From: Octopus bimaculoides
Lineage: Eukaryota
NCBI RefSeq assembly: GCF_001194135.2
Contig: NC_068995.1
Span: forward strand, 44,426,585 to 44,490,584
DNA: 64,000 bases
Direction: 5' to 3'
The translations under genes were made by a program, and so were the position numbers. Shown here piece after piece: positions 19,115 through 55,059 of the stretch; within the stretch, counting starts at the first letter, position 1, and the number at the start of each line of letters is the position of its first letter. The notes beneath the pieces were generated by a model. The model was given only the letters and a program-made list of their open reading frames with translations. It had not been told where the DNA came from and ran no database searches.

Positions 19115-19115
<1 letters not shown>
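17705..19115 (+). mobile_element. Non-autonomous Helitron-like element spanning an assembly gap
   Basis: A|TC 5' end followed by a (TCTG)n tract. 3' hairpin cccgg-gcaaag-ccggg (19088-19103) and CTAG|T terminus (19112-19115). Confidence 0.7.
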
Positions 19116-19150
<35 letters not shown>

Positions 19151-20980: not shown

Positions 20981-21022
20981 GGCTTTGATTCCAGTAACAT
21001 TTTTTTTCTTTTGTTTTGCCAG

Positions 21023-21166
21023 AGTTTTTTAGGTTTTGGCCAGAGTGCTGAGATTGACATTGTATTAGATGGCCAAGAGAGCAGAAAAACTGCTGAAATT
21101 AAAACTGAAGAAGGCAAAAAAGAGAGACATTTTCTCTACTTTGATGGTGAAACAGTATCCGGCAAG
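21023..21166 (+). CDS. VPS26: VPS26 coding exon 2 (SFLGFGQ...TVSGK)
   Basis: ttttgccag| and AAG|gtgagt; 144 nt, phase 0/0. Confidence 0.95.
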
Positions 21167-24100
21167 GTGAGTTTTTATTGTTTAGCTGTCTTTTCTAAGA
21201 CATCTATTTGCTTTATTGTCATTTTTTTTATTGTTCTCATAATTTGAGCATTATTTTACTATTCAAACTTTATTGTTTTAAAGTAATTGTTTCTAATTTA
21301 GGTACAATTTAAATATAGATGTTTATTATTCTGTCTTGCAATAACGAGATCGTGTTTTACAAACTGTTATTTTTATTTAATATAAATTCTATGGTAACCA
21401 TCATCATCATCATCATAGCGGACGTTAAACGATGATGACGATGATGATGATGATGGTCACCATAGAATTTATATTAAATAAAAATAACAGTTTGTAAAAC
21501 ACGATCTCGTTATTGCAAGACAGAATAATAAACAGCATGTATTTAGAGCTTTCTGTGTATATATATATAAAAAAAAAGAAACCCCAGTCTTATTGTAAAC
21601 TTGTTACATAAAGACAGCAGCTGAGATTGTGATAAATCAAATATCCAAATAGCTAGACACCTGTGTCACAGCAACCATTATTGACTAAAGTATGCCTTTC
21701 ACTACAGAGCACTAAGACATCAACACCTTGTCAGCTATAACCCTGTTTGCCTCTGTACCAATTCAACATTTGTTATCCCAGAATGGGAATAGTGGATTAC
21801 AGATATTGATATTGTTTTACACTGTTTATACTTTGACAGGGTTATTTGATTACTAATTAAGGTGTTCCTTGAATAGTTAACTTACAGAATTATTATTGAG
21901 ACAGCAGGAGTTCAGATACTAGCATTACTCAATTAAGAAAATTATCCTTGATACTCTTTTACTTGTTTCAGTCATTTGACTGTGGCCATGCTGGAGCACC
22001 ACCTTTAGTCGAGCAAATCGATCCCAGGACTTATTCTTTGTAAGCCTAGTACTTATTCTATCGGTCTCTTTTGCCGAACCACTAAGTTACTGGGATGTAA
22101 ACACACCAGCATCGGTTGTCAAGCGATGTTGTGGGGACAAACGCAGACACACAAACACATACACACACATACATACATATNNNNNNNNNNNNNNNNNNNN
22201 NNNNNNNNNNNNNNNNNNNNNNNNNNNNNNNNNNNNNNNNNNNNNNNNNNNNNNNNNNNNNNNNNNNNNNNNNNNNNNNNNNNNNNNNATATATATACAT
22301 ATATACGACGGGCTTCTTTCAGTTTCCGTCTACCAAATCCACTCACAAGGCTTTGGTCGGCCCGAGGCTATAGTAGAAGACACTTGCCCAAAGTGCCACG
22401 CAGTGGGACTGAACCCGGAACCATGTGGTTGGTAAGCAAGCTACTTACCACACAGCCACGGATTACCTATTCATGGTAATCCAGGATTTGCTAGTGAATG
22501 CTTTAACTCTTTTGTTACTATATTTCTGTTGGAACATACTGTCTTTCATAATCATCATTTAACATCTACTTTTCCATGTTTGCATGGATCAGATAGCATT
22601 TTGATAGATTTGGGGCAGATGCCCTTCTTGTTGCCAACTCTCACCTGTTTCCAGGTAAAGTAATATTTTGCCAAGACTAAAAACAAACACTGCTTGTATG
22701 ATGGTGATGCTCAATTACAGTCATTACACGGTGTCAAGACAAGGGTGCGCACACACCCATACAGAGCTTCTTTCAGTTTTCATCTCCCAAATCCACTCAC
22801 AAGGCTTTGGTTGGCCTGAAGCTATGGCAGATGACACTTGTCCAAGATATCTTACAGAGGGAGTGAACTCAAAACCACATAGTTGGGAGGCAAGCTTCTT
22901 AATCACACAGCTATGCTTGTGTCTTTGTTTCAAAAAATGTACCAAAATTTGAAATCATTATTTGGTTAATTGGTACTGGTTGATTTCTTTGTTACAGAGC
23001 TGGCAGATTTAATAGTATCTGTTGGAACAAGTGTTTTCACCATCTGTAATATTCTTTATCTGAATAACATTGTACAATGACTTACATGAGGGTATCATCT
23101 TTATGTTACTGTGTGTTAATTACATTTACAATTTTACTTTGTTTGTAGAAGTATTGTTTTCTGCTATTTCTGTTTTAATAGATTCTCTTTTAATTCTCAC
23201 TTTTTTCTGTATTAGGTGAATGTCACCTTGAAAAAGAGTGGCAATAAATTGGAACACCAAGGTATTAAAATAGAATTTATTGGACAAATTGGTACGTAAT
23301 TCTTTTAAGGATTTTTACAATATCTACTAAAATAGTTTTTCTCATATCATTTTCAATTTGTTTAATCAACAATTTCTCTATGGTTCTGCTGTTAAAATGC
23401 TTTAAATAAAACAACCACTAACAGCAGTCATGTTATATGCAAAATTTCTCAGGCTGGTGAGTTTGATACTGTTAATGTTCTCTGGAGAAGATAAATGAAA
23501 ACTATATTGTACAACTTAGCTGAAAGGTTCTATTAGACATGGCCAAAAAGCTTTACTAATGACAAATCTAATCACATTGCTTTCACTGAGTTGTGTGATG
23601 TAGGACAACTTCAAGAAACCTCATTCTACAGAAACAGGAGTGGTGGTCACTGAGGTGGGAAAGAAGAAGAGGTTTTGTCTTCATCCCATTTATAATGTTT
23701 GAAATGAGTGATAGATGTGTGTGTTGCATTGGTAGTCATCGAGGTGAGTAAAGTTGTGCTTCATGGAAACACTTTTGTATGGATCTAAGACTGATCAATC
23801 TAGCAAAGATAGGCACTAACTGTTGATGTCCATGAATGGAAGAGACATTATCAAAACCAATTTCCATTTTGGGTTGAAGCAAACAAAATCATTGCAAACT
23901 AATAGAAACCTTTTTGATAAAAGATCAGAAGGTTTTGGTAGTAAGTTTGGAAATAATTTAGAGGCTGAGGAGAGGATAAGTGCTTTTGAAATGCTTGTTT
24001 TAGAAGTATGGTGGTGGTGGTGGTGGTGGGGAGTTCTTCCTGGTGTTGTCAGCAGTATTGTTGTCATTTTGTCCTGCAGAGTAAACCGCCATGGTGGTTT

Positions 24101-27100
24101 AGTAGCTGTGGTTAGTTGTATGAGATATATGTGGAGGAACGTAAGTCAGAAGATAGTATTCATCTCTGACAGCTGTGACAGGTTAGCTATAGACGAACAT
24201 TTGTTGCCAGGGGGAGTCAGTGGTGTAAAAGTAGCAGATAATTGACCAGCGGAGAGATTATGTGCTTTTGGGGTTAGGGGAGGTGAGGAGATTAACAACT
24301 GTCGATAGTTTAAGATGGTGGTAGTGAGGGGTTTACAGGAACCAAGATGTATTGATTAAATTCATTAAACACACACGTCATTTAATTAACATGTGGTGGT
24401 GGTTGTGGCTGGAGAAGCTTGGTAAGTAGAGGTAGATGAACTTAAAACCAGAGTAAGTGGATGTCTTTGTTGTTGAGATTCTGGTGACAAAAATTGATGG
24501 TAGGGAATGTGAAGGCACCACCTTTGAGTGAAGTTGAATTAAAGAGTGTTTCCTGGACAGTGGAGTTAGTAATATGGGATGAGAATGTTATCATCCGACA
24601 AATTTTTGTTGACGTTGTTGTTTTAATTTTATTGTTGATAATATAACACAAGTCCAACACCATCCAACTGTTACAAGTTATTTTCCACTAATTTTTTCAG
24701 TCATTGTTTATTCAGTTACGAGAGTTTGTTTACCATAGACACCAAGCCCATGCTTAATTCATCATGATGGTAAATTATTTCACCTCTTGATAGAAATATT
24801 AATAAAAGAGTAAAGATTAATTGAATCTAAGATTGTAAAGCTAACTTTATCACCACGTACGGTAAAGTGGTAAATATTTTGCAGTGTTGTTTGATGATGT
24901 TATCTCAGATAGATAAAGAAGTCAGTAATTGAGATAATACAAGAGTGAAAAGACAGTGAAATTTATTTAATAAGCAGTTTTTTTAGGTGATTGTTAAAAA
25001 TATATGCAACACTAGATTAGATTGTTAAACTAGCTGCTGCTTGTTTTTAAAGCCAGGTAGAGGGGAATGAATAAGTTGGTAGTTCTGGATGGATCTTGTG
25101 TGAAATGTCCTTGAGGCTGGATAAGGGTAAATACGCAAGTTGATGCATTTTAGCAGAAAACTTATCTTTCGACAGATATAGTTAAATCTGTAATAATTAC
25201 TACTTCATGCCTGATTTGAAACCTATTAATTCATTAATTAAACTATTTCAGAGTTGTATTATGACCGTGGCAATCACCATGAATTTACGTCACTTGTCAA
25301 GGAATTGGCTCGACCAGGTATCCTAACCCAAAGTACCAGCTACAATTTTGAGTTTTTACAAGTTGAGAAGCCATATGAATCTTATACTGGTGTCAATGTT
25401 AGGTTGAGGTATGTACACTCTCTCTTTCTGTCTGTCTCTCTTTTTAGTCTTGTCAAGGGTTTGGTAATCCTATCTGGTGACAGTGCCACAATAAAATACA
25501 TCTGGTATTTAAAGTGTTGGGTTGTGGTGACCCTTCAGTTTTGTCGAAGACACGACGACTCTGGCGGTGATGCCATGATATAATGCACCTAGTGCACCCT
25601 GTACAGTGCTTGGTGTCAGAAAGGATGTCCAAACATTGAAACTTATTAATGAGATCATCATCATCGTCATCGTTTAACGTCCGCTTTCCATGCTAGCATG
25701 GGTTGGACGATTTGACTGAGGACTGGTGAAACCGGATGGCAACACCAGGCTCCAATCTGATTTGGCTGAGTTTCTACAGCTGGATGCCCTTCCTAACGCC
25801 AACCACTCTGAGAGTGTAGTGGGTGCTTTTACATGCCACCTGCACAGGAGCCAGTCCAGCGGTACTGGCAACGAACTCGCTCGAATGTCTTTTCATGTGC
25901 TAGGAAGGTGACATTGGTAACGGTCATGCTCAAATGGTGCTATTTACATGCCACTGGCACGAAAGCCAGACAGCTGGTGCTCTGGCAACGATCACGCTCG
26001 GACGCTGCTCTTAGTGATTTACTGGTACTGGTGCCATCACGATTTCGCTTTCGCTTGCCCCAACAGGTCTTGGTTGAGATGTGGTTCTGTTACCTGTCTA
26101 GGAGGATAGTGACAGCCTGTCCAACTCGTCAGCATGGAAAGCTGACATAAAATCGATGGTTCATGATGATGATAACAATACATATGATGAGCCTTTACCA
26201 GTTACACTTCACTGACTTTAGCAATACCATTCCATCTCTGCTTCTCTAATTTCCATTTATATTGTCATTGAACGCAAACATCGAAATAAAACTCAAGTTT
26301 TAATAGTGAACTTCGTCTTCCAAGAAATGACGATTTGTTCTTTTCTCTTTTTTCCTTCTGTTCATTTTAAATGAATTTGTTTGTTGATTTGTGCAGATAC
26401 TTTCTGCGTGTGACCATTGTGAAGAGAATCACAGATGTAGTGAAAGAACAAGACATCATTGTACATACACTCTCACAGTATCCTGATATGAACAACAGCA
26501 TCAAAATGGAAGTCGGCATTGAAGATTGCTTACATATAGAATTTGAATATAACAAATCCAAGTAAGTTTCTGCGGATGTCCCTATCTGTCTGTCTAGCTT
26601 GATTGCTATCTATCTGTCTGTCTAGCTTGATTGTTTTCTGTTTGTTTATCTAGCTGTCATGAGCAGCATTTCCAAACCAGAATTTCCTGGAGTCTTAGGG
26701 TTCTGTGAAGGATCACTTGTGACTCCATGATAAATAGTAATAAATATGCTAATTATATGCAAATGTCTTTTGGTGTAATTTTATATTTGTAATTTTATTA
26801 TCTCTGCATGTTCATATTCAAAATCTAGGCATCTGTTGAAGTAAGGAGACCTTACAGGAACAGTAACCTCTTAACAGGCAATTGGGGGGGAATTTAGTTT
26901 TAGACAAACATTCTTTGTGGCATCTGATGGATTTAACACAAAGAGAAAGGAAAAGATTACTAAAGATAGATTTTTCTATAGAGTTTCCTGAGATATGGAA
27001 TTTACTCAATAAAATAGCAGGGAATTACTGGTTTAGAGAGACACCTATCAGCCTAGCAGGATAATTACTTGTGAAATAAAACAAATTTATAGAGCAATGA

Positions 27101-30100
27101 GCCATCTTCAGTCTCCTTGATAAAAATCCAATTGTTGATACAACACAACATTATGACTACTATTATTGTAATAGTCATGAGATGCAGACATGGCTATGCA
27201 GTTAAAAAGTTTGCTTCCCAACCACATGGTTTCAAGTTCACAACCATCATGTGGTATCTTAAGCAAGTGTCTTCTATTATAGCCTCAGGTCAACCAAAGC
27301 CTTGTGAGTAGATTTGCTAACTGGAAACTGAAAGAAGTCCAAGTGATTGTTATAAACAAGTGTTGCTGTCAATCAAGCAATGACCTTCATTTCCAGTACT
27401 TTAAAAAAACATGTCTGGCCATGGGGAAATATTACCTTGCTTGGGAACAGATGAGGGTTGGCAACAGGCAGGGCATCAAGCCGTATAAACTCTGCCTCAA
27501 TAAACTTAGTCTAACAAAAGTAAGCATGGAAAAATGGACATTAAAATGATGATGATGATGATGAGTCATGTACAGGAGTAATATTTTCAACAATTAGTAA
27601 ATTTTGTTACTAAATTCTGGGCTTTAAAAAAGGAGATCAAATCTCGCTATTTTTCACATTAATCATCAGTGGAATATTAACTACAACTGGTTATTTCTGA
27701 CCGTAAAATGGAATGATTGCAAGAAATATGTCTACACTGTTTGTGTTTGCTTTCTAGGTATCATTTGAAAGATGTAATAGTGGGCAAAATATATTTCCTA
27801 CTTGTCCGAATAAAAATCAAACACATGGAAATACAAATCATTAAAAGAGAGACCACAGGAACTGGTGAGTATTTATCTAGTTGTTATTGCTTTTATGTAA
27901 CCCCAGGCCTGTCCTGATCCAGCAGATGTATGATCAAGGACATTCCAGGAGTGACCATTCCATCATTTTAATTTTATTTGTAAAGGCAATGAGCTGGCAG
28001 AATTGTTAGCATGCCAGGAAAATTGCTTAGTGGCATTTTGTCTGTCTTTATGATCTGACTTCAAATTCTGCTTTGCCTTTCATCCTTTTGGGGTCAATAA
28101 AATAAATACCAGATGATCACTGGGGTCGATGTAATCAACTTACTCCCTCTCCCGAAATTGCTGGCCTTGTGTCAAGATTTGAGATCAATTTTATTTATTA
28201 TGTTTAGAGTAACATTATCCAGTGAGATTTTTTTACCCTTAAGACACTAGTATGTAATTTGTGGGGAGATTTGGTTGCTATTTCTAGCAGATAGAGCAAC
28301 CACAGAAATTCCTTTTATCCTCATCAGTAATAAAATATAAATGGTGATGAGTCTTGTAGACGTAAACTCTTGAGTTTTATCCTTGACTCAGTTTCAACTC
28401 CTAGTATTAAACTTTTCAGTGTGCCTTTGGAGACTGACCCACTCATTTTAACTTCCATTGTTTGGGCAGGCATAGCTTTGTGGTTAAAACTTTTGCTTCA
28501 CAATCATGTATGGTCAATTATATCATGGGCGTGTGCTTTATAACCTTGCCTTGGGTCAATGCAATATTTGCAAATACTAACTGGATTAACAAACTGTGGG
28601 GAAACAATGTTGAATGGCCTTGAGTAGGACAGTTAATTTATGTGCCCTGTTGAACACCATTACCACCTGGTTCTTCAGTGATTCTGACAGGGTCCATTGT
28701 CTTACAAAGTGTTCAGATCAGTTTTCTGGTCACAGGGTAACAAGACATCATCATATGCTACTTCCCATTGCAATAACAATTCATGTATTTTGGTTTCTTG
28801 CTTCTTTGACTAGTCTCGATGATATCAATCACTCGCTGTCTTGGAGGGTCTCTAAAAGTCTTCCTCTTAAGTAAAAGATACTTGCCCAGGGTGTTACATA
28901 GTGGGGCTGAACCCTAAATCTTGTCTTGCCCACCAGACACCACATGATATAGATAGGTTTGAAACATCCCCTCTATCGTCCTTGGTGAGGTAGTTATGGG
29001 GTTTTTTTCTTGGTAATTTAATCTTTTATCCTTTTAATATTTTTTCTTTCTTTTCTTCCTGTAAAAATGTTAATAAAATGATAATAATAAAAACGATAGT
29101 TTTTCTGTTTGACCCATAAGATGTGATGATATTTGTTCTACTTTCCAGGTCCCAATGTTTACAATGAGAATGAAACAATTGCAAAATATGAGATCATGGA
29201 TGGGGCACCTGTCCGAGGTATGATTAGTTTCATCAATGTTTTTTGCTGAATATCTGTTAAATATAATATGTTAGTAGACTCATGAATAAAAGTTGATAAT
29301 TATTGGTCTCTTAAATAAAATATCAATAGTTATTGATTCTTTTAAATATCTAATTATTAATCTCATAAATATATATAATTATTGATCTCATAAATAATAT
29401 CTATAATTATTGATCTCATGATTACATATTGATCCCTTAAATATAATATCAATTTGTTGACCTCTTGAGTAAAATATCAATAATTATTGGTTTCTTAAAT
29501 AAAACATAAAAAAATTATTGATCTCTTAAATAAAAACATCAATAATTATTGGTCCCTTGAATAAAACATAAATAATTATTGATCTCTTGAATAAAACATT
29601 AGTAATTATTGATCTCTTGAATAAATGTCTACAATTATTGGTTTTATGAATATCTATAATTTTTTTTTATCTATGAATTGAATCTGTTTAATATCTTCAG
29701 TTATTGACTTGATTAGATGTATCATTTGAATAATGCTTTATATTGATTAGAAATATCAAAGCTAATTAAGAGAGAGAATGTGAGTAGTTGTACATTCAAT
29801 CAAATATTGAGCAATTTCTGATGAAAGGTTACAACTTACTATTTGATGAGATATTTATTATGGGGTTTCATAGAGCAGTAGTACTTTTGGTAAGGTTCCT
29901 TCCAAAACTCTCACATTTGCTTTAATGAACTGTCTGTATGCGATAGTGCACCACCTCCTGGTCAATGACAATTGGCAGGCTGGCCAAACTAGGTTGAAAC
30001 TGACTAATGAGTGCCAATGACTTTATAAAATCTCTGTAAAATTCTGTAAGGGTTTGTCACCGTGCACACATGAACACTGGAAGTTGTAGTGTAGACAAGG

Positions 30101-33100
30101 GTAGTTGCAGTTACCCACCTGACCCTGTCCTCTGCTAGTGATACTCTTTAAGGTGTCAATGTTCAAAAGGCAGAGGTCTTTGTCAAGACAAAGTGTATTT
30201 GTTATCAATTTTGTTCATAGAATGATTGATTTTCTATGCTTGTATGGATTATTGTTGTTGGCACTCCGTCGCTTACGACGTTGAGAGTTCCAGTTGATCC
30301 GATCAACGGAACAGCCTGCTCGTGAAATTAACGTGCAAGTGGCTGAGCACTCCACAGACACGTGTACCCTTAACGTAGTTCTCGGGGATATTCAGCGTGA
30401 CATAGCGTGTGACAAAGCTGACCATTTTAATTACAGGCACAACAGAAACATGAAGTAAGAGCGAGAGAAAGTTGTGGTGAAAGAGTACAGCAGGGTTCGC
30501 CACCATCCCCTGCCAGAGCCTCGTGAAGCTTTAGGTGTTTTCGCTCAATAAACACCCACAACACCCGGTCTGGGAATCGAAACCGCGATCCTATGACCAC
30601 GAGTCCGCTGCCCTAACCACTGGGCCATTGCGCCTCCACTTGTATGGATTAGATGAAGACTTATTTCAGGCAAGATTTTATGGCCAGATACCCTTCCTGT
30701 CATCAACGTTTTGCCTTTCTTACAAGTAAAGAATTTTTTATTTCACAGTTCTTCAAAAAGAACAACCAACCATAACATTGACAAGGAATGCAAACATCAA
30801 TTCACTGTTTTACTCTGGCTGTAACAAGCAAAACTGTGAAATATCAGCATTCAAGCACATTCACATGCTCACACACACACTGCTATATATATATATATAT
30901 CATCATCATTGTTTAACGTCCGCTTTCCATGCTAGCATGGGTTGGACGATTTGACTGAGGACTGGTGAAACCGGATGGCTACACCAGGCTCCAATCTGAT
31001 TTTGCAGAGTTTCTACAGCTGGATGCCCTTCCTAACGCCAACCACTCTGAGAGTGTAGTGGGTGCTTTTATGTGCCACCCGCACGAGGGCAAGTAGGGCG
31101 ATACTGGCAACGGCCATGCTCAAAATGGTGTATTTTCTGTGCCACCTGCACAAGAGCCAGTCCAGGGTCACTGGCAACGATCTCGCTCGAAAGTCCATTA
31201 CACATACTACTCACAACATTGGTAAACCCAAGACAATTGCTCAAGGTGTTGTACAGTAGGACTCAGATGTAAAAAGAATAAGGCTGTGATTATTTCAAAT
31301 AATATAAAATGGAAGTATAACTATTTTTGAAGAAACCAGCCCTTTCCTCTCTCTAATACAAGAGGTATCAGGCTGATAGATCAACTTGACAAACTTGTGA
31401 AGTTTAATATAAACATTGTTAGAATATTCGTGGCTTTGTTTATATTTTCTTAACACTTTTCTTTGTTATTGTCCTGAATAGGTGAGTCTATACCAATTCG
31501 ACTGTTCCTAAGTGGATATGATTTAACACCAACTATGAGAGACATCAACAAAAAGTTTTCTGTCCGTTATCACCTTAATTTGGTTTTAGTTGACGAGGAA
31601 GAACGCCGTTATTTCAAACAACAGGTAACTTTTAATTTCTCCTAATTTTGCACTCGCTCTCTTTCAGAACTCTGACAAGAGCAGAGACATTGCCTTTGAC
31701 AATTCCTCAAAAGCATTGGTAACTCATGTATTCTCTCTCCCACGCTCACACAGTTTTGGAGCTAGTAAAAACATGATAGTAGTAGATAACAGGACTTGAT
31801 TCTTTGCAGTATCTAATACTCATTGTCCTCAACTCAAATCTCTTAAGTCTTTGCGGTTTTTAGTTTGAATGGGGTGAAGAAGAGATTGATGTCTGCAGGA
31901 GAAAACATAATCAACAAGATGTTTTAGAGCAGGGGTTTTCAAACTGTGGTCCGCGGACCACAGGGGGTCCGCAAGGACAAGACAGTGGGTCCGTAGACAG
32001 CAAATACTTTTTATGAGCAATTTGATTTTATATATGTTTTTTAATTGAAATCTTTTAATTGACAATAAACCTATTTGTTAAATACTGCTAAATAAATAAA
32101 TGTAAAAATATATGTTATTTTAAGCAAATATTTATGTATAAATTTCATAAGCGTTTATAACGGGGTCCCCAAGGTAAAGCCTGAAATATAAAGNNNNNNN
32201 NNNGCAGGGGTTTTCAAACTGTGGTCCGCGGACCACAGGGGGTCCGCAAGGACAAGACAGTGGGTCCGTAGACAGCAAATACTTTTTATGAGCAATTTGA
32301 TTTTATATATGTTTTTTAATTGAAATCTTTTAATTGACAATAAACCTATTTGTTAAATACTGCTAAATAAATAAATGTAAAAATATATGTTATTTTAAGC
32401 AAATATTTATGTATAAATTTCATAAGCGTTTATAACGGGGTCCCCAAGGTAAAGCCTGAAATATAAAGGGGTCCACAAGTCAAAAAGTTTGAAAACCCCT
32501 GTTTTAGAGGACTGCAGTTCTAAGGGAAACTTGAGTATTTTATGAACAATAGACCCAGTAATGAGGACACAAAAATAAAAAAACTGATTTGATAGGTAGG
32601 ACTCTGTAGTAGGTATAGGGTAAATTCAAAAGACCTGAGAAATGAGACTGTTTTACTGTTGTATCTATTTGCTTGTTGTAATGTTTTGGTAAATGGGTCT
32701 TTGCTAACCAGTCAACTGGCTTTATTTTGATTGTGTGTGCAGCATTCTTCTATATATGTAAGCACTACTTCAGTTTAACTATTCCCTTTAGTTTTGTTGA
32801 GAAATCCCAGTCTCTGGGATATAGTTTGGTAATATTTTGCTCCACTTAAATGTGGATGTTCTGTTAGAACAAACTATACTGCAGTAGATACCATGAGTAC
32901 AGTTTGTTCTAACAGAACATCTACATTTAAGTGGGAATATATATACTCTTTTACTCTTTTCAGTCATTTGACTGCGGCCATGCTGGAGCACCGCCTTTAG
33001 TCGAGCAAATCGACCCTGGGACTTATTCTTTGTAAGCCTAGTACTTATTCTATCGGTCTCTTTTGCCGAACCGTTAAGTGACAGGGACATAAACACACCA

Positions 33101-33559
33101 GCATTGGTTGTCAAGCAATGCTAGGGGGACAAACGCACACACACATATATACGACAGGCTTCTTTCAGTTTCCGTCTACCAAATCCACTCATAAGGCTTT
33201 GGTCGGCCCGAGGCTATAGTAGAAGACACTTGCCCAAGATGCTGCACAGTGGGACTGAACTCAGAACCATGTGGTTGGTAAGCAAGCTACTTACCACACA
33301 GCCACTCCTGCACCTATATATAGTTTTTGATAAGCTTTGGTATTGTTCTTATGTATGAGTTGAATCCATTTACTTATAGATGTTTTTTTTGTTTTTTTTT
33401 TTTTCCCCCCATCAGGAAATCACTATATTCCGGAAAGCTGACAAAGTACGTAAAAGCATCCAGGCCACATTGCAAGCGCAGCATGCTACAATGCAGAGAA
33501 TGACTTTTCGTCGGGAACAGGCTGAAGCTAATAAAGATAACAGTAGTGATGATCAGTAA
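21023..33559 (+). CDS. VPS26: Vacuolar protein sorting 26 (retromer subunit), coding exons 2-9; 335 aa if a single ATG exon is added
   Basis: Exons 21023-21166, 23216-23291, 25252-25408, 26397-26561, 27758-27864, 29149-29217, 31482-31624 and 33416-33559 join in frame with GT-AG introns. Hallmark peptides: [89 protein letters not shown]. Confidence 0.97.
21320..21534. repeat. 95-bp-arm inverted repeat with one mismatch and a 25-nt loop, in VPS26 intron 2
   Basis: 21320-21414 is the reverse complement of 21440-21534 except A21396/C21458. Confidence 0.95.
23216..23291 (+). CDS. VPS26: VPS26 coding exon 3 (VNVTLKK...FIGQI)
   Basis: attag| and G|gtacgt; 76 nt. Confidence 0.95.
25252..25408 (+). 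CDS. VPS26: VPS26 coding exon 4 (ELYYDRG...VNVRLR)
   Basis: tttcag| and AG|gtatgt; 157 nt. Confidence 0.95.
25663..26150 (-). mobile_element. SINE family A copy in VPS26 intron 4
   Basis: Matches the 7761 and 47491 copies. Confidence 0.85.
26397..26561 (+). CDS. VPS26: VPS26 coding exon 5 (YFLRVT...EYNKSK)
   Basis: gtgcag| and AA|gtaagt; 165 nt. Confidence 0.95.
27758..27864 (+). CDS. VPS26: VPS26 coding exon 6 (YHLKDV...ETTGT)
   Basis: ttctag| and G|gtgagt; 107 nt. Confidence 0.95.
29149..29217 (+). CDS. VPS26: VPS26 coding exon 7 (GPNVYNE...GAPVR)
   Basis: ttccag| and G|gtatga; 69 nt. Confidence 0.95.
29298..29660. repeat. Degenerate ~29-nt AT-rich minisatellite (taattattgatctcttaaataaaatatcaa) in VPS26 intron 7
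   Basis: About a dozen recognisable units. Confidence 0.8.
30253..30640 (-). mobile_element. Full-length tRNA-derived SINE (family C)
   Basis: Head ggaggcgcaatggcccagtggttagggcagcggactc...ggtttcgattccc and (CAA)n tail. Near-identical copies at 51952-52385(+) and 53178-53489(+). Confidence 0.9.
30899..31190 (-). mobile_element. SINE family A copy in VPS26 intron 7
   Basis: Matches the other family A copies. Confidence 0.85.
31482..31624 (+). CDS. VPS26: VPS26 coding exon 8 (GESIPIR...YFKQQ)
   Basis: gaatag| and CAG|gtaact; 143 nt. Confidence 0.95.
31930..32501. mobile_element. hAT-type MITE (~300 bp; appears doubled by an assembly overlap at the 10-N gap)
   Basis: Perfect 15-bp TIRs caggggttttcaaac / gtttgaaaacccctg and 8-bp TSD ttttagag (31922-31929, 32502-32509). 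Confidence 0.92.
33416..33559 (+). CDS. VPS26: VPS26 coding exon 9 (EITIFRK...SSDDQ*)
   Basis: Long polypyrimidine tract then catcag|; TAA at 33557-33559. Confidence 0.92.
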   Translation, partial: EITIFRKADKVRKSIQATLQAQHATMQRMTFRREQAEANKDNSSDDQ

Positions 33560-39576: not shown

Positions 39577-40049
39577 CATATTAGCCTTGTTTTAAAATAT
39601 AATAGGTACAAGCATTGCACTTTGCAGCAAATAAAAATACATTCACTGGTGCAGTGCATTAAAAAAAAAAACCTGAAGTTTTCCTACGCTTCTAGAATTT
39701 GCTGACTCACTATGAAAACTTGTGATACACCAGCCTACCATGCATTGCAAAGTGGTCGAAAACATCTGGATTAAAGGAACAAAAAAAAAAAAAAGCCTTT
39801 AGATTTTTAGTTATCTCCCTTCATCTTCTAAGCTTAAATCCTCCCTCCTATGATCACCTTTATCATATATACTTCCTTTAGGCTTTGAATTTTAAATTAC
39901 TAGTCAATTTGTATAATATATCACTGACTATACAAGTCAAGTATTGGTATAAGCAAGGTTTTTTCCCCCCCACTCTATCTAAAATACCAATTATCATAAT
40001 TATTTGGTAAAACTTTGCCCAGTTTATTTGCATTACTCATCACAATGCT

Positions 40050-47013: not shown

Positions 47014-47077
47014 ATGGACATCAGACCAAACCACACAATTTATATTAACAATTTGAATGAAAGTATTAAGAAAGATG
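47014..47077 (+). CDS. SNRPA: U1A/SNF coding exon (MDIRPNH...IKKD)
   Basis: ATG at 47014; G|gtaagt. Confidence 0.95.
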
Positions 47078-50000
47078 GTAAGTCGACTAGCTTTGCTTTG
47101 GAATTTAGTGAAGTATCATTCAGATGGTAACAGATTAACAAGGACCTAAAGACAAACTAGATTTCTTTTACAGGTCCAATAATTTGGGTGGTGATTAGAA
47201 GTTCCCATTATGTAATAACATTCCAGTATGTGGATTACTACAACTCTTGAAGTGTATTTAATGTAAGAACCTGGAATTTTGGGTTTCATAAATTCTTTTG
47301 GAGCCCCATCACATCTTCACTTTCTTTTGCTCACTCCAACTGAGTAGCCCCATATCTCCTCTACTGCAAGACCTTTATTTCTGTCCCTCTTCATACTATT
47401 AACCTCATCGCCTGGCACAAAGCCATCTCCTTCAATACTGCTACCCAAGAAGTTTTGCAAGTAACTTGGTGATGTCACTGCTGCCAATGCCATCATCATC
47501 ATCGTTGTTTAACGTCCGCTTTCCATGCTAGCATGGGTTGGACGATTTGACTGAGGACTGGTAAAACCAGATGGCTACACCAGGCTGCAATCTGATTTGG
47601 CAGAGTTTCTACAGCTGGGTGCCCTTCCTAACGCCAACCACTCCGAGAGTGTAGTGGGTGCTTTTACATGCCACCGGCATGAAGGCCAGTCAGGCGGTAC
47701 TGGCAACGGCCATGCTCAAAGTGGTGTATTTTACGTGCCACCTGCACAGGAGCCAGGAAGGCGATGCTGGGCACAGGTGCCATGACGGTTTCGCTTTCGC
47801 TTGCCCCACGTTTCCAATGAAGGAGACGACGTTGGCATGGGTGCCATGTAAAATGCATTCAGTACACTGTAAAGTGGTTGGCATCATGAAGAACGTCCAA
47901 CTGTAGAAAGTGTATGCTAAAACAGGTAGTAGAGATTGGTACAAGTTTTCTCACTTGCCTACTCCTGTCTCACTGCCCAACCCATGCCAGCATGGAAGGG
48001 AAGACATTGGATAATAATGATTCTACATTACGTTGCTTTGTCATGTTTGTTAGCCTTAATTTACTTCTGCTAACTCTTGATCTACATCCAATCTTTTCTA
48101 TTCTCCAATATATTTTTATATTTCTATAATTCTCTGATTGTACTCTGTATTTTTTTTTTTTCAGAACTAAAGAAATCTTTATATGCAATTTTCTCACAAT
48201 TTGGCCAAATTCTTGACATTGTTGCCTTAAAAACTTTGAAATGTCGAGGACAAGCTTTTGTAATTTTTAAAGACATCAACAGTGCCACAAATGCTCTCCG
48301 GTCAATGCAAGGCTTCCCGTTCTATGACAAACCAATGGTAAGATCAACATTTCATGTCTTCTTAATGTGTGTTTGTGTCTTTCTTACATGTGGCTAGATT
48401 TTATCAATTCTTAATCATCATTAATGCCTGGTTCTTTAAGCTTGCATGGGTCAGGTAGATTTTATGCAGCCAGATACCCCTTCCTGTTGCCAATCCTCCC
48501 CTGTTCCTAAGCAAAGTAATATTTCACCATGGAGGACAGTATATGAACAACATGGCTCATATGACAGTGATACTCATTTGCAATCATCATAGGATGTCTA
48601 CCCAAGGGGTACACACACACACGACAGCTTCTTTCAGTTTCTATGTACCAAATCTATCCACAAGGCCTTGGTCAGCCTGGGACTCTAATAGAAGACATCT
48701 TATGACCACTTATGTTTGGGAAACAAGCTTTTCAACCACACAGCCATGTCTGTACCTTCAACATGTACATATAAACGAGGTAGTGAGCTAGCAGAATTGT
48801 TAACATGTCAGATGAAATACTTAACAGCATTTCATTCATCTTTATGTTTTGAGTTCAATTTCCACCAATGTCGACTTTGCTTTTCATCCTTTAGGGGTTG
48901 ATATAATCAGCTTATGCCCCTCCCCTGAAATTACTGGCCCTGTGCCAAGTTTTGAAATCAATATACACATATAGAATTACACTGTCTGGTCAAAATCTTT
49001 GTTTTGCCTTTCTTTATGAAATCCTTAATATACAGGATTTGTCCTCTTTTTAATTCTTTTGATACCAAAAGAACTTGATGATACCCCAACTTCTATTTAA
49101 AAGGATCTGAATTAAAACCATTCCACAATCATTTATTTTCCAACTATCAGCTTAAGAATGGTAAAGTTATTTCACTAAATTTGTATCTCTTTTCTAAATT
49201 AATTGAAATACATTCACTGTGTTTTTGCAAGAATATTCTGCTTCTAATCACACTATAGTTTGGTTTAGAATTTTGCTTTACAACCACATCTTTGGCGTTA
49301 GGAAGGGCATCCAGCTGTAGAAACTCTGTCAAATCAGACTGGAGCCTGGTGTTGCCATCCGGTTTCACCAGTCCTCAGTCAAATCGTCCAACCCATGCTA
49401 GCATGGAAAGCGGACGTTAAACGATGATGATGATGATGATGATGATGTTAGCAAAAGGGCTAAGGACCCTATTATGTAGCTTTAGTCTTGTCTTTTCAAA
49501 CTGGAATGTATCCTTGATTTTGTATTTTTACTTGAAAAATAATAATAAATGGCTAATGTTTTCATTTGTTTTACCAGAGAATACAGTATTCCAAGAAAGA
49601 TTCTGATATCATTGCGAAGATGAAAGGTACCTATACAGAAAGACCAAAAAAGAAAAAAGATGATGAGCCAGAAAATAAGAAACGCAAGAAGGGAGCTTCC
49701 CAACAGGCTGTTGCCGCTGCTGCTAAGTGAGTCGGGGTTGTTTATTTATTTATTTTTTTATGTTACACTTCTTCATATTATATCGTATCTTAAAGCGTCC
49801 AAAGATGGCTGACCTGTCTCTCCAGGGATAAGAAATACTTCCAGCTGTAAGCAATTGTTGAGTCTGTATAAAGACCCAAATTCGTCACATAGTTGTATGG
49901 TTAAGAATTTTGCTTCACAGCCACATGATTCCTGGTTCAATTCCATTGTGCAGTTCCAGGTTTTTTTGGGGTTTTTTACTGCTGTTAAAGCCCACAATAT

Positions 50001-53000
50001 AGATCAAGTAATAAACTATCAATGGAACCTCTTTATGAATGCTTGATCTGCTAAATGTAGCAAGCTATTCTGCTTCTAATCACACTATAGTTTGGTTAAG
50101 AATTTTGCTTTACAACCACATGGTTCCTGGTTCAATTCCATTGTGTAGTTTGTTTTTTGTACTGCTGTTATAGCTCACAGTATAAACCAAGTAATAACCC
50201 AACATAGAAACCTCTTAATGGTTCCTTGATCTACTAATAGTTTCAACCAATTCTGCTTCTAATCACACCTTGCAGTTTTAAAGAAAAAATCACATGGGAT
50301 TGTCATGGGTGGGACGCCTTTGATTTAAAGGGCCTGCTGGGTTAAGATTGACTTGGGCTTGAACAAAAATTGAAGTGAAGTTGTCAAATGTTTTGATTAA
50401 AAACAGCTTTTTATGTCTTTTTTTAATTTTTTTATTGATCTGATATTATAAGCTATGTTTATGTTCCAGGGCCCAGGCAGCTGGTGTAGTACCACCTCCT
50501 ATCCAACCCATTTCAGCAATGGCTGGTCAACCAGTTCCTCAACAACCTGTACTACAACAATTACAGCAGCCAGTTGTTCAAAGTAAGTGATTGTTTATCA
50601 TTCATACTGTATAATCATCATCATCATTATCAATACTTGGAACTCAGTGTCTTCATTCAAATGCTGTTGTGCTTCCATGAATAAGGAAGTGTTTCTGTGG
50701 TCATAGCTTTTAGTTTTTTCTCAAACTTCCATCTCGTTATTTTCCCCCGTTTTTATGACCTAAACTCTTTTCAAGTCTAAAGTAAATTCATTCCTTTCGT
50801 CTTAATTTCTCCGTCTTCATAGTCCCTTACATTGAGTGGCTTCTTGCCTTGTTTGGAATTTTCAATTAAAACAATAAAGGGACCATTGACCGAGTAATGG
50901 CTGTTGACCAGTGCTGGCAGGAGTGGACATCTCTTTGTGGTTAAGAAGCTTGCTTCCTAACCATTTGGTTTTGGACTCGGTCTCATTTTGTAACACCTTA
51001 GGCAAATATCTTCAACTAGACCCTTAGGAGCCTTGTGGATTTGGTAGGTAGAAACTGAAAGAAGCCTGGTATGTGTGTGTGTGTGTGTGTGTTTATATTC
51101 ATGTCTCAACACCCTGTGATGGTTGTAAGTGTGCATCACCATCATACAAGTGATGTCGTTTGCTTCCAGTCTTCCATGTCTGGTCATGGGGAAATATTAC
51201 CTTGCATGGAAACCAGTGAGGGTTGGTAACAAGAAGGGCATCCAACCATAAAAAAAAAATCTGGCTCAAGGAATTCACCCTGACCCATGCAAGCATGACA
51301 AAGTAGATGGAGGGGTGAGAGGATATTTCTAATGAGATTTTGTTTATTACATCTAAGACAAGATGGGGGTCCCACTGCACTGATTCATCTCAACAGTTTG
51401 AGCTTCAGTACAGGCTCCACTTCTGTTTTTTTTAACATTGGTATGACTTAAGATATTACTGCAGTCTGATATAGGAGGCCCATCGCCATTGGAAGTGTCT
51501 CAAAAGTAGTTTAAAAAAAAAAAAAGGGAATCATGAATCAGTAAGACAGTTCCTAATTGGTTGATCCATTATTTATTTGTGGCATAAGCAAATAGAAAAA
51601 TTGATTTAAACAATGTGAAGGCACATGGCTTAGTGGTTAGGGTGTTGGACTCCTGATTGTAAGATTGTGGTTTCAATTCCTGGACTGGGCATTGTGTTGT
51701 GTTTTTGAGCAAAACACTTCGTTCCTTGTTGCTCCTTTCCACTCAACTGGTAAAATCGAGTAGTCCTGTGATAGACCAGCACCCTGTCCACAGAGGAGTG
51801 TATACACCAGAAAAACCAGGAAACTGTCCCTATGCTCCTTACAGAGTAGTGTGGACTACCCAATATATTTCAACAGGAATATGGTAAATGGTTGGTCATG
51901 ACTAGAACATCTTTGGTCATGTCTGCTCATTCATAGTTAAGCTCAAGCCTGTGGAGGCGCAATGGTCCAGTGGTTAGGGCAGTGGACTCATGGTCATAGG
52001 ATCGTGCTTTCGATTCCCAGACCGGGCGTTGTGAGTGTTTATTGAGCGAAAACACCTAAAGCTCCACGAGGCTCCGGTAGGGGATGGTAGCCAACCCTGC
52101 TATACTCTTTCACCACAACTTTCTCTCACTCTCTCTTCCTGTTTCTGTTGTGCCTGTAATTCAAAGGGCCAGCCTTGTCGCGCTGAATATCCCCGAAAAC
52201 TACGTTAAGGGCACACATGTCTGTGGAGTGCTCAGCCACTTGCACGTTAATTTCACGAGCAGGCTGTTCTGTTGATCAGATCAACTNNNNNNNNNNGCAC
52301 GTTAATTTCACGAGCAGGCTGTTCTGTTGATCAGATCAACTGGAACCCTCGACGTCGTAAGCGGCGGAGTGCCAACAACAACAAGTTCAAGCCAAACAGC
52401 CACAACTTAGTCTGGTGGAAGTAAATGGAATATTTCAGTAGTTTCTACAAGAATCCCCCGTTATTGTTACTGTATTTGTCTTTATCTCTAAAGTCCCATG
52501 TAACTGTGTTTAGTAACTAATTCACCCCATTTTCTATTGCAGATTCTACAAATATGGCAGCGCCAAATACCATTCCAGAACAGCCTCCTAACCAAATTCT
52601 GTTCTTAACCAACCTTCCTGAGGAAACCACAGAAATGATGTTGTCAATGTTGTTCAATCAGTAAGTCTTAGTTTCACATTGGAAGCATTTGACTTGTGTA
52701 TTTATGACAAGAGATCACCAGATTGGATAATGGACAGGCAATTAGATTTAATTAGTTGTTCATGTCCTGTTATTGCTCTGGAAATGGCACTTAACTGTCA
52801 ACAATCCAGTCCACTTAGTTGTAGCTCTGTGTCCTATGACAAGAGGTAGGTGAGGGTCACTGGATTGGATAATAGATGGACGACTAGATTAGTTGTTCAT
52901 GTTCTGTTATTTCCGTAGAAATGGCACTTAACTGTCAACAGTCCAGTCCACTTAGCTGTTAGCGGGTACCAGTGGAGTGTAACTGTACTGTATTTATGAC

Positions 53001-53889
53001 TGTAATGTCATCAACCCAATGAACTTTACTATAAGTAAATACCACAGTATGGTATACTTTACAATACTGTGTCAATGACCAAGATTGACACAGCTAAATG
53101 CACTGTCCAGAGTCCACCTAGCTGTAAATAGTTACCACAGTGTGGTGTAGCTCATTGCACTGTATGTATGACCAAGAAGTGGAAGCGCAATGGCCTAGTG
53201 GTTAGGGCAGCGGACTCGCGGTTTCGATTCCCAGACTGGGCGTTGTGAGTGTTTATTGAGCGAAAACACCTAAAGCTCTACAAGGCTCTGGCAGGGGATG
53301 GTGGCGAACCCTGCTGTACTCTTTCACCACAACTTTCTCTTACACACTGTGTCGCGCTGAATATCCCCAAGAACTACGTTAAGGGTACACGTGCCTGTGA
53401 AGTGCTCAGCCACTTGCACATTAATTTCACGGGCTGGCTGTTCCAGTTGATCGGATCAACTGGAACCCTCGACGGAGTGCCAACAACAAATGACCAAGAC
53501 ACTTAACTGTTGACAGCTCAGTCTGTGCTACTGTAAGTAGGTACTACTGTGGCATCAATGTGAAATTAGCAAGTGTTTTGTGGCTTACCAAACCATGCTT
53601 TTTTTTTTTTTTTTAGAATTTTATTTATTTATTTATTTATTTTACTGAAGGAAATCTATCAGAAATACACCAGTAGCTATGTCATCTAGTGATTTTTTTA
53701 TGGATTTTTTTTTTCCTTTCTCCTTTTAGATTTCCTGGTTTCAAAGAGGTCCGTTTGGTGCCTGGTCGGCATGATATTGCATTTGTTGAATTTGAAAATG
53801 AAATGCAAGCTGGTGCGGCAAAGGATGCACTTCAAGGCTTCAAGATTACACCAAACAATGCAATGAAAATCACATTTGCTAAGAAGTAG
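47014..53889 (+). CDS. SNRPA: U1A/U2B''/SNF-family snRNP protein (two RRMs, 258 aa)
   Basis: Exons 47014-47077, 48165-48337, 49578-49726, 50470-50582, 52543-52660 and 53730-53889 total 777 nt in frame. RRM1: [46 protein letters not shown]2: [47 protein letters not shown]. Confidence 0.97.
47491..47760 (-). mobile_element. SINE family A copy (antisense) in U1A intron 2
   Basis: Matches family A. Confidence 0.9.
48165..48337 (+). CDS. SNRPA: U1A/SNF coding exon (ELKKSLY...YDKPM), RRM1 core
   Basis: tttcag| and ATG|gtaaga; 173 nt. Confidence 0.96.
49292..49447 (+). mobile_element. 5'-truncated SINE family A copy (sense) in U1A intron 3
   Basis: ttggcgttaggaagggcatcc...gcggacgttaaacg(atg)n. 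Confidence 0.9.
49578..49726 (+). CDS. SNRPA: U1A/SNF coding exon ([18 protein letters not shown]...AAAA)
   Basis: taccag| and AA|gtgagt; 149 nt. Confidence 0.95.
50470..50582 (+). CDS. SNRPA: U1A/SNF coding exon (Pro/Gln-rich linker)
   Basis: ttccag| and A|gtaagt; 113 nt; phases fit the neighbouring exons. Confidence 0.9.
51952..52385 (+). mobile_element. tRNA-derived SINE family C in U1A intron 5
   Basis: Reverse complement of 30253-30640. Confidence 0.9.
52543..52660 (+). CDS. SNRPA: U1A/SNF coding exon (...[14 protein letters not shown]...LFNQ)
   Basis: ttgcag| and CA|gtaagt; 118 nt. Confidence 0.95.
53178..53489 (+). mobile_element. tRNA-derived SINE family C with TSD
   Basis: Flanked by the 10-bp direct repeat atgaccaaga (53168-53177, 53490-53499). 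Confidence 0.9.
53730..53889 (+). CDS. SNRPA: U1A/SNF last coding exon (FPGFKEV...TFAKK*)
   Basis: ttttag|; TAG at 53887-53889. Confidence 0.96.
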
Positions 53890-54013
53890 GACAAGAAAGA
53901 AGACAGTAAAAATATGATGAAAGAAATTTGGTGCATTTCAGTAAAACTTACAAAATAAACCATCAAATTCTGCACAACTTTGCTGCCAGATGGAATGGTA
54001 AGCAGCATCAATG

Positions 54014-54041
54014 CCATCGTCATTGCACCATCCGACGGTGG
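54014..54041 (+). promoter_or_regulatory. U1 snRNA SLII-mimic hairpin (predicted U1A/SNF binding site) in the U1A/SNF 3'UTR
   Basis: CCAUCGUC [AUUGCAC CAUCC] GACGGUGG: 8-bp stem with one G-U pair and a C-G closing pair. Confidence 0.8.
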
Positions 54042-54234
54042 ATTCTCATTTTACATTCTTCATTTTGGTGGGTGAGGGGGGGTGAAGTTAATTCGCAGTA
54101 TTCTTACCAAAACTCATTGACAGATTTCTTCCTTTCTTTCACCATTTCATAGTTTTTGTTTGTTCGTTTTTTTTTTTCCAACTGAGATATTTGTTTACTT
54201 TTCTTTTATATTGAAATACAAATTAGAGAATAAC

Positions 54235-54240
54235 AATAAA
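54235..54240 (+). terminator. SNRPA: Distal polyadenylation signal of U1A/SNF (a proximal AATAAA is at 53954-53959)
   Basis: AATAAA followed by U/GU-rich downstream sequence. Confidence 0.65.
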
Positions 54241-55059
54241 ATGACAAATTCTCTCTTAAAAACACTGGGAAAATTTTGTTTCTATTTAATGTGATCTTGT
54301 TTGTTTTTATAATTATCAATGTTCTTAATGAGCTTGATGTAGCCAGTAGTATATATCGGTGGGTACCAGAAATCTGTTGAAGTCCCACCAAAGATTTGGT
54401 CTTTCTCTGTAATATAACGAAAGAGGAGACATATTGCCTGAATGAATCCCTGCATTGAATGCTAAGTGAATCATTTAATGTTCTCCTTCCATGCTGGCAT
54501 GGATTGGACAGTTTGATGAGAGCTGGCAAGCCAGTAGACTGTGTAATGCTCTACTGTCTGTTTTGGCATAGTTTCTATGGCTGGATGTCCTTCCTAAAAC
54601 TAACCATTTTACAGAGTGTACTGGGTGCATTTTCTTGTAGTACCAGTGAGGCCAGCAAGTAACTTGCAAGACTTGACTCCTTAGCTAAGTAGGGGTTCTA
54701 GTATTGGAGGAGGTGACTTTGTGCGAGGTGATGAGTATGATAGAGAGACAGAAACAGGTGTCTTGTTGTAGGAGTCTACCCTCATGTTTCAGGGAGGTGT
54801 ATAAAAGTGAAGTGGTTTAAGCGATTGGATAAGGTGAGCAAGAGAAAGGAAAGTGGGAGATGGTGGGGAAGAGGTATGCAGTGAGTGAATACAGGTGGAG
54901 GGAAGGGGGTGTTAGGAACATACATTTTGGGAGTGGGAGAGGGGCATGCAGTGAATGGTGAACGCAGGTGGAATAAGCGGGTGTTAGGAAGATGAGTTGT
55001 TGGGGATAGATTGTGTACAGGTGCATTGGCATACCTTTAGGGCCTCAATTTTACTTGGA

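Follow-up and report, generated by a model that had tools for sequence, protein, structure and literature searches.

A U1 snRNA stem-loop II mimic past the stop codon of the octopus U1A/SNF gene: a candidate autoregulatory hairpin

The U1A/SNF gene of Octopus bimaculoides, which lies in a 64,000-nucleotide stretch of contig NC_068995.1 (positions 44,426,585 to 44,490,584, in the following the window), carries past its stop codon a small hairpin whose loop opens with the heptamer AUUGCAC directly after a C-G closing pair, in the manner of stem-loop II (SLII) of U1 small nuclear RNA (snRNA). Comparison with orthologous genes suggests that this hairpin is a candidate binding site for the gene's own product and that it takes part in an SNF-dependent negative feedback of some kind, a reading to which we assign a probability of about 0.7. 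Binding by SNF, the direction in which it would change the output and the step at which it would act are all matters that we infer from these comparisons.

The hairpin, CCATCGTC-ATTGCACCATCC-GACGGTGG, is built from seven Watson-Crick pairs and one U-G pair with C54021-G54034 closing the loop, and it starts 125 nt past the stop codon, the distal AATAAA following another 194 nt on. The original prediction, made from the letters of the window, had described the 8-bp stem, the C-G closing pair, the loop beginning with AUUGCAC and the 125 nt to the stop codon, all of which are confirmed, and its figure of about 195 nt to the distal AAUAAA measures 194 nt. The hairpin is found in both the minimum free energy (MFE) and the centroid structures given by RNAfold, in a 76-nt as well as in a 371-nt context. 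The folding energy is unremarkable (z = -1.0 and -0.3, respectively), and since the energies are ordinary, the case rests on motif and conservation rather than on stability. In 300 first-order Markov simulations of the 64-kb window, both strands counted, the expected number of C-AUUGCAC hairpins per window is 0.19 for stems of at least 4 bp and 0.017 for stems of at least 6 bp, and none with a stem of at least 8 bp occurred in any simulation; for the sense strand of one 371-nt 3' untranslated region (UTR) the expectation is at most 5e-5 at a stem of at least 6 bp. The window itself contains eight copies of ATTGCAC on its two strands, this site alone being stemmed, and within 53890-54600 there is no second box (allowing one mismatch) with both a preceding C and a stem. 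Two other C-preceded copies look like chance occurrences, namely a stemless one at 53154 in the last U1A/SNF intron and one with a 2-bp stem at 39612-39625 (GCAUUGCACUUUGC), some 7.4 kb ahead of the start codon.

The identification of the gene as a U1A/SNF orthologue, which had likewise been proposed, is upheld by tblastn, by the annotated protein and by structure matches. Modelling of splice sites on tblastn matches of human U1A and the O. sinensis protein P0001 gave six coding exons (47014-47077, 48165-48337, 49578-49726, 50470-50582, 52543-52660 and 53730-53889) ending in a TAG stop codon at 53887-53889, the acceptor at 46997 being preceded by one or more 5'UTR exons, and the modelled 258-aa product is identical to XP_014783260.1 (P0124), 'U1 small nuclear ribonucleoprotein A [Octopus bimaculoides]'. 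The product has two RNA recognition motifs (RRMs), and the N-terminal one closely matches RRM1 of U1A, U2B'' and SNF, being about 85% identical to that of human U1A and matching the solved structures of human U1A (3pgw_A, E = 2e-57), U2B'' (E = 3.9e-56) and SNF (6f4g). Downstream of the coding part there are two AATAAA hexamers, of which the distal one is followed by a U/GU-rich stretch. The proximal one, located upstream of the hairpin and a possible alternative poly(A) signal, has no U/GU-rich sequence downstream; it is also present in O. sinensis at offset 66, and in Argonauta no AATAAA or ATTAAA is found at a comparable distance from the stop codon, the first occurring at offset 354.

Conservation within the cephalopods is the first line of evidence in favor of a function. 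The 28-nt hairpin is identical in O. sinensis (L001) and Argonauta hians (L002), where it starts 133 and 370 nt past the stop codon, respectively, and where the remaining UTR is barely alignable. When 2.3 kb around the 3' end of the gene are compared between Octopus and Argonauta by blastn, the only significant match apart from the coding exon is a 74-nt non-coding block (E = 1e-23) which, at 90.5% identity, is better conserved than the last coding exon at 83.8%, and which contains an acceptor-like CCAG, the 8-nt ATGGAATG, a GGUAAG donor and the hairpin. Decapodiform transcript contigs were recovered as well. Their protein cluster has a second, named member, CAE1235518.1, an accession by which we presume the contigs to be Sepia-like, as they are called here. 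In these contigs a first hairpin, CCAUCGUC-AUUGCACCGCCU-GAUGAUGG, retains the heptamer, the closing pair and the 12-nt loop, and its 3' strand carries two changes, U-G to U-A and G-C to G-U, that both preserve pairing. A second hairpin, CCAGC-AUUGCACCUC-GCUGG, has a 10-nt loop and lies 61 nt downstream of the first, and both are predicted by RNAfold. The heptamer is invariant across all cephalopod copies, and the linker reads CGCCU in the Sepia-like hairpin against CAUCC in octopus. Heptamer, closing C-G and stem are thus kept in O. sinensis, Argonauta and the Sepia-like contigs, as the proposal of a conserved loop on a changing stem had it, and judged by these alignments the hairpin is under selection in cephalopods. 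The possibility raised along with the original prediction, that the mRNA might end ahead of the hairpin, is answered for the Sepia-like mRNAs, since a contig with both hairpins ends in poly(A), about 200 nt past hairpin 2, and the hairpins are thus part of the mature message there. In the octopus window, 54205-54241 resembles the Sepia-like mRNA sequence just ahead of the poly(A) tail.

Hairpins of the same kind recur well beyond the cephalopods. The orthologous locus or transcripts were fetched for several named species and the region 3' of the stop codon was scanned. Single or multiple boxes were found in a chiton, an oyster, an abalone, Capitella and Lingula as well as in the locus encoding protein P0004 (see the table below), and across these taxa the closing C-G and AUUGCAC stay constant, while the stem (in sequence and in length), the residues in the 3' part of the loop, the number of copies and their position all differ. 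The hairpins of the chiton lie in two tandem arrays (positions 6670-7399 of the locus; 11.7 copies of 50 nt and 3.2 copies of 42 nt) with one hairpin per unit, and such an array could serve as a strong sponge or sensor. In the abalone the three boxes are part of an irregular hairpin of -45.5 kcal/mol at 6755-6850, approximately 270-365 nt past the stop codon, in which boxes 1 and 3, both following a closing C, are predicted to be placed opposite one another in the helix, with box 2 near the tip. This modelled geometry is reminiscent of the polyadenylation inhibition element (PIE) of vertebrate U1A mRNA and would blur the line between hairpin and PIE designs. No such motif is found downstream of the stop codon in Drosophila biarmipes or in three Ixodes loci from two assemblies, and intronic ATTGCAC copies of Ixodes form no convincing hairpins.

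A strong strand bias is furthermore seen in contigs from metagenomes of the Joint Genome Institute (JGI), among which a scan gave 80 loci encoding relatives. Their 3'UTRs (46,290 nt) hold 45 copies of ATTGCAC in sense against 3 in antisense, and the remaining 179,630 nt of these loci hold 10 with both strands counted. A C precedes 40 of the 43 distinct sites (p = 3e-26) and an uninterrupted stem of at least 4 bp is present at 21 of them, the expectation being 13%; kinship among the metagenome loci inflates such counts somewhat, which leaves the direction of the result unaffected. Positives occur mostly in metazoan-like loci of at least 57% identity, in some 23 of the 38 that have 100 nt of flank or more, as counted by hand, and by their best named match two of these loci are caenogastropod-like and one is chironomid-like. 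One gastropod-like metagenome transcript (L028) contains C-AUUGCAC twice in its 3'UTR, at offsets 388 and 630, with no local stem at either place. According to one MFE prediction the two boxes could be carried by the opposing strands of a helix spanning about 240 nt, possibly another internal-loop design.

Loops of 10 nt account for 18 of the 39 stemmed ATTGCAC sites in non-cephalopod loci, and a covariance model was built from 13 non-cephalopod hairpins having 10-nt loops only, a restriction made because the MAFFT alignment that included loops of 11-12 nt was misaligned. Searched against both strands of the window, this model ranks 54015-54040 first (16.1 bits, E about 0.1) and the chance-like copy at 39612-39625 second (13.4 bits), and it detects the Sepia-like hairpin 2 at 25.4 bits.

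The original prediction had spoken of a candidate invertebrate element, of which no description in molluscs was known to it, and of a possibly independent evolution. The element is peculiar neither to cephalopods nor to molluscs, since hairpins are present in four molluscan classes and also in an annelid, a brachiopod and many metazoan-like transcripts. This recurrence weakens the notion of independent origin, which is no longer the simplest one, an old and rapidly turning-over feedback site being at least as likely.

The same data bear on the notion that the hairpin is devoid of function. It is short, its local folding energy is unremarkable and the covariance model gives it an E-value of just 0.1 in the window, all of which would be compatible with a hairpin that arose by chance, with a piece of a U1 pseudogene or with a motif that has another reader, for instance a site of the miR-25/92 type, that family having the heptamer as its seed. 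Chance is however in poor agreement with the expectation calculated for a single UTR, with a block conserved above a coding exon among octopods and with the strand bias and the recurrence in orthologues of several phyla. A U1 snRNA pseudogene fragment is rejected as no U1 match was obtained with Rfam and as the stems are unrelated between taxa, and a target of miR-25/92 would have to read GUGCAAU, the complement, and it is this strand that is depleted among the metagenome loci. Lack of function consequently has a very slight probability in our estimate and is largely excluded by the comparative data.

What the hairpin may bind is suggested by its own design. It shares with U1 SLII the C-G closing pair and AUUGCAC, and its variable 3' loop residues fit the role of a spacer, which in the U1 SLII loop tolerates changes in length. 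It differs from U1 SLII in having a loop of 12 rather than 10 nt, a stem of unrelated sequence and a location in a protein-coding transcript. For Drosophila SNF, structures and mutants have shown that a closing C:G pair together with loop residue C7 gives RRM1 high affinity for U1 SLII without U2A', and that SLIV of U2 snRNA, with G7 and a U-G closing pair, is alone bound up to about 100-fold more weakly (PMC5992148). The octopus hairpin is of the U1 type (C7), unlike the U2 SLIV type, which has G7 and a loop closed by U-G or U-U, and U2A' should therefore not be needed. Since the conserved fingerprint of the hairpins equals the published recognition code of the protein, the encoded SNF may be expected to bind its own message.

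Feedback would then follow the logic of snRNA target mimicry. SNF in excess of what the U1 and U2 snRNAs can take up would be free to bind the hairpin on its own pre-mRNA or mRNA, whereby the output of the gene would be lowered, and the step repressed would most likely be the formation of the 3' end, by way of either polyadenylation or the choice of terminal-exon fate. In vertebrates, the 47-nt PIE directly precedes the poly(A) signal and is occupied by two U1A molecules, the residues 103-119 of which mediate an inhibition of poly(A) polymerase for which a single bound U1A is insufficient (PMC5071671, which summarises Boelens et al. 1993 and van Gelder et al. 1993). The octopus protein has, by its sequence, a basic stretch at the place of U1A residues 103-119. 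A plain copy of the PIE mechanism is nevertheless doubtful because there is one hairpin and it lies 194 nt from the signal, and cooperative binding of two proteins with inhibition of poly(A) polymerase is unlikely for such a lone site. In cephalopods the lone hairpin would probably act together with U1 small nuclear ribonucleoprotein (snRNP) at the nearby GGUAAG donor, in parallel with the U1 site that accompanies PIE in mammals. U1 snRNP on the donor could supply the multiplicity that is otherwise lacking by bringing U1-70K and another SNF, or, alternatively, bound SNF might shift the choice of terminal exon between polyadenylation and splicing. Provided that the feedback is negative, we consider direct inhibition of the polymerase rather unlikely to be the main step, and control of the donor less likely still.

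A number of observations weigh against the feedback reading as a whole. Octopods have a single hairpin, whereas the inhibition of poly(A) polymerase in vertebrates takes two bound U1A, and the gap between hairpin and AAUAAA is 194 nt (50-200 nt in other taxa), whereas PIE sits just upstream of the signal. The proximal AAUAAA at 53954 could yield mRNAs that are free of the hairpin, and the missing motif in Drosophila biarmipes and Ixodes would make the loop dispensable in some lineages. The count of covariations across species is inflated, the hairpins having been picked for possessing stems, and it carries little weight. Finally, the sign of the effect is uncertain, as tethered U1A can raise expression (PMC9136276).

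The last point leads to the notion that SNF binds the hairpin without any negative feedback, and that binding stabilises the mRNA, enhances its 3' processing or export, or makes the message a platform or reservoir for newly made SNF. When U1A is recruited to reporter or cellular transcripts in human cells, expression goes up more often than down (PMC9136276). It is likewise in agreement with this notion that a single bound U1A inhibits poly(A) polymerase inefficiently and that the hairpins are kept in mature polyadenylated mRNAs. However, positive feedback on an abundant housekeeping snRNP protein would presumably be unstable and is, to our knowledge, without precedent, the vertebrate orthologue represses through sites of this kind, and their maintenance through turnover in many phyla, in numbers from 1 up to about 16, would better suit a sensor of dosage. 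We accordingly regard a non-negative role as quite improbable and continue with negative feedback as the preferred reading.

The GGUAAG donor, which was not part of the original prediction, lies in the same conserved block as the hairpin, the block beginning with CCAG/AUGGAAUG/GUAAGC (slashes denote splice or splice-like junctions). The sequence AUG/GUAAG is conserved in Octopus, Argonauta and the Sepia-like contigs 12-16 nt ahead of the stem, and its junction is found 108 nt past the stop codon in Octopus and 25 nt past it in the Sepia-like transcripts. In the latter it is a used splice donor, since two contigs, L004 (SRR8281681) and L005 (ERR4030425), share the junction GAATG/ATGGCTGAC exactly at G/GUAAG; L005 has seven silent differences in its coding sequence and stems from a sequencing run other than that of L004. 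Splicing at this donor removes the hairpins, and most Sepia-like contigs are unspliced there. The exon joined to the donor in L005 (positions 901-1356, corresponding to the start of the L004 tail) contains a 151-aa open reading frame, MADTSSYSLEERLL..., without a Pfam match.

An O. vulgaris gene model, CAI9733970.1 (P0122), fuses U1A to a downstream LRRC49-like gene with the peptide ...AKK-WNE... at the transition, and its sequence can be read as AAGAA/GTAAGA...CCAG/ATGGAATG/GTAAG, hence, by indirect evidence, as use of the same donor. In the window, the stop codon overlaps a donor-like AAGAA/GTAGGA (53882-53892), which reads GTAAGA in O. sinensis, and CCAG/ATGGAATG/GTAAG at 53981-53997 resembles an 8-nt micro-exon. 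The O. vulgaris model appears to use both sites, thereby dropping the stop codon, and could be an artefact of annotation as well as a real conjoined transcript. Past the donor the model continues with LRRC49-like sequence (peptide MVAFVLKCYFYISK), the exon for which is not found within about 10 kb, in the window or in the O. sinensis and Argonauta flanks. The locus of protein P0004 has, besides its boxes, two GAGC-AUCGCA... variants with GCU(G) downstream, and its GGUAAG precedes the first box by about 78 nt, which may constitute a second lineage pairing a donor-like motif with U1A-type sites.

These observations raise the question whether the hairpin mainly controls the donor, as a cephalopod switch between splicing and polyadenylation in which feedback would run through the choice of isoform. 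SNF on the hairpin would then either favor or impede U1 snRNP at the neighboring donor. One product would be the normal unspliced mRNA, polyadenylated some 200-300 nt downstream with the hairpin kept, and the other a read-through transcript that loses the hairpin by being joined to some distant exon. With its junction 108 nt past the stop codon, the latter could in Octopus be a target of nonsense-mediated decay (NMD) or a conjoined transcript with the LRRC49-like gene. The location of donor and hairpin in one conserved block, the use of the donor in two Sepia-like runs and in the O. vulgaris conjoined gene model, and a spacing of 12-16 nt that should permit steric or cooperative contact with U1 snRNP all point in this direction. 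The donor cannot however be the general mechanism, since other phyla have the hairpins without an enriched motif of this type, 9-mers complementary to U1 (at least 7 of 9 positions) in hairpin-bearing 3'UTRs of other taxa numbering 15 in sense and 16 in antisense, and because of this lack of enrichment the donor is treated here as a cephalopod feature. NMD is furthermore in poor agreement with the Sepia-like junction, which at 25 nt past the stop codon is too near for the usual 50-nt rule. Donor control as the main role of the hairpin therefore appears improbable to us, and negative feedback by SNF, in which the donor may take part, remains preferred.

If SNF-dependent feedback is accepted, the feedback known from vertebrate U1A is probably widespread in invertebrates. 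We would further suggest, tentatively and at somewhat less than even odds, that feedback through U1 SLII mimics is ancient, going back at least to Lophotrochozoa and possibly to Bilateria, with constant turnover of the hairpins, loss in lineages such as drosophilids and ticks, remodelling into the two-box PIE in vertebrates and fusion with a live donor in cephalopods. The device would then exist in one copy in octopods, two in a cuttlefish-like species, three in oyster, Lingula and abalone and about 16 in tandem in the chiton, and in cephalopods free SNF and U1 snRNP would jointly decide the fate of the terminal exon.

Table. Features of the octopus window and of orthologous loci bearing on the hairpin
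Feature	Location	Strand	Remarks
Hairpin CCATCGTC-ATTGCACCATCC-GACGGTGG	54014..54041	+	8-bp stem, 12-nt loop
5' stem strand CCAUCGUC	54014..54021	+	final C is the loop-closing C
12-nt loop AUUGCACCAUCC	54022..54033	+	AUUGCAC heptamer (U1 SLII type), then variable linker CAUCC
3' stem strand GACGGUGG	54034..54041	+	pairs with CCAUCGUC
U1A/SNF coding part	47014..53889	+	tblastn and splice-site model; 258 aa
Presumed 3'UTR up to distal poly(A) signal region	53890..54260	+	stop codon to distal AATAAA
Proximal AATAAA	53954..53959	+	upstream of hairpin; possible alternative poly(A) signal
Conserved octopod non-coding block	53981..54053	+	blastn against Argonauta, 74 nt, 90.5% identity, E = 1e-23
GGUAAG 5' splice site	53997..54002	+	junction between 53997 and 53998; 16 nt upstream of stem
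Distal AATAAA	54235..54240	+	194 nt after hairpin; U/GU-rich stretch follows
Chiton Liolophura sinensis	L016		about 16 hairpins CAGC-AUUGCACAUU-GCUG after stop codon
Oyster Saccostrea	L017, L018		three hairpins; also in transcript contig
Abalone Haliotis rufescens	L019		three AUUGCAC boxes sharing a highly stable fold, z = -6.5
Capitella	L020		one hairpin AUCAGC-AUUGCACCUA-GCUGAU
Lingula	L021		three hairpins
Protein P0004 locus	L013		three boxes, all lacking an uninterrupted stem of 4 bp; a single GGUAAG precedes them

Other features of the window are of less immediate concern. A Vps26 orthologue is found upstream of U1A on the same strand (20981-33556, +; eight exon matches, 78-100% identical to the Sepia-like protein), and in Argonauta, Lingula, Ixodes and Sepia-like contigs Vps26 is arranged head-to-head with U1A, which suggests an old microsynteny and a possible inversion in Octopus. 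Four near-identical short stretches at 25699-25755, 30938-30994 and 47534-47590 (all -) and at 49339-49395 (+) look like copies of a repeat dispersed over introns of both Vps26 and U1A that give rise to spurious tblastn matches, and two very AT-rich regions, 4001-6000 and 18001-20000 (GC 0.19 and 0.23; GC skew +0.39 and +0.22), are probably simple or low-complexity repeats.

A full-text literature search, the coverage of which was incomplete so that an earlier description is possible, returned no account of such hairpins in invertebrate SNF/U1A mRNAs, which agrees with the original statement that none was known from molluscs. U1A and its PIE are the textbook case of an RNA-binding protein that controls its own 3'-end processing, and this case has been described for vertebrates only; conservation of the U1A 3'UTR is likewise described for vertebrates (PMC5071671). 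The invertebrate elements would represent the same logic in another architecture, that is, terminal hairpins in variable copy number, remote from the poly(A) signal and coupled, in the case of cephalopods, to a donor, and they reside in a single SNF-type gene, the one protein of which serves both U1 and U2 snRNPs. If this is true, the feedback loop dates to long before the vertebrates, its absence in Drosophila would explain why it was missed, and animals with one, two, three and many sites would form a natural series in which the number of bound proteins required, and the target of their inhibition, could be studied. The motif would also provide a simple genomic signature for elements of snRNP-protein homeostasis in non-model animals.

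Among known systems PIE (RF00460) is the closest, sharing with the octopus element its location in the 3'UTR of an orthologous gene, an AUUGCAC-type mimic of U1 SLII and the logic of sensing free protein. PIE also has in common with other invertebrates the presence of at least two boxes, which in the abalone face each other across a helix. The two boxes of PIE (AUUGCAC and AUUGUAC) are however placed in internal loops of one stem adjoining the poly(A) signal, whereas octopus has one box in a terminal loop 194 nt off, with a proximal AATAAA upstream of the hairpin. Rfam gives no match at the gathering score anywhere in the window and none at E of 10 or below in 53880-54400, U1 and U1A_PIE included. 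The view that the element is built differently from PIE, as a single terminal-loop hairpin far from the signal, is therefore well founded, and by its sequence it would best be described as PIE-like in logic and not as a member of PIE. In mammals, a U1 site resembling a 5' splice site in the terminal exon of U1A adds to repression by PIE (Guan et al. 2007, RNA 13:2129, as cited in PMC5071671). The arrangement shared with cephalopods is a GGUAAG beside a U1A-type site past the stop codon, conserved across cephalopods, but the Sepia-like GGUAAG is a really used donor in some transcripts and not a docking site only, and such a motif is not enriched in other invertebrates. The mRNAs of U11/U12-65K and U11-48K are subject to feedback via a conserved enhancer that binds U11 snRNP (PMC5473595). 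There too, a component of an snRNP, and in 65K a relative of U1A/U2B'', is under the control of a conserved snRNP-related element that alters the fate of the 3'UTR or isoform, but this element is read by base-pairing of U11 and not by the RRM of the encoded protein on a hairpin mimic. More distantly, surplus ribosomal proteins such as yeast L30 and bacterial S8, L1 and S15 bind mimics of their structural RNA in their own mRNAs and thereby stop their own synthesis. In these systems the proteins, the RNAs and the step regulated (splicing or translation) are different, but the principle of target mimicry is the same as that proposed here for SNF.

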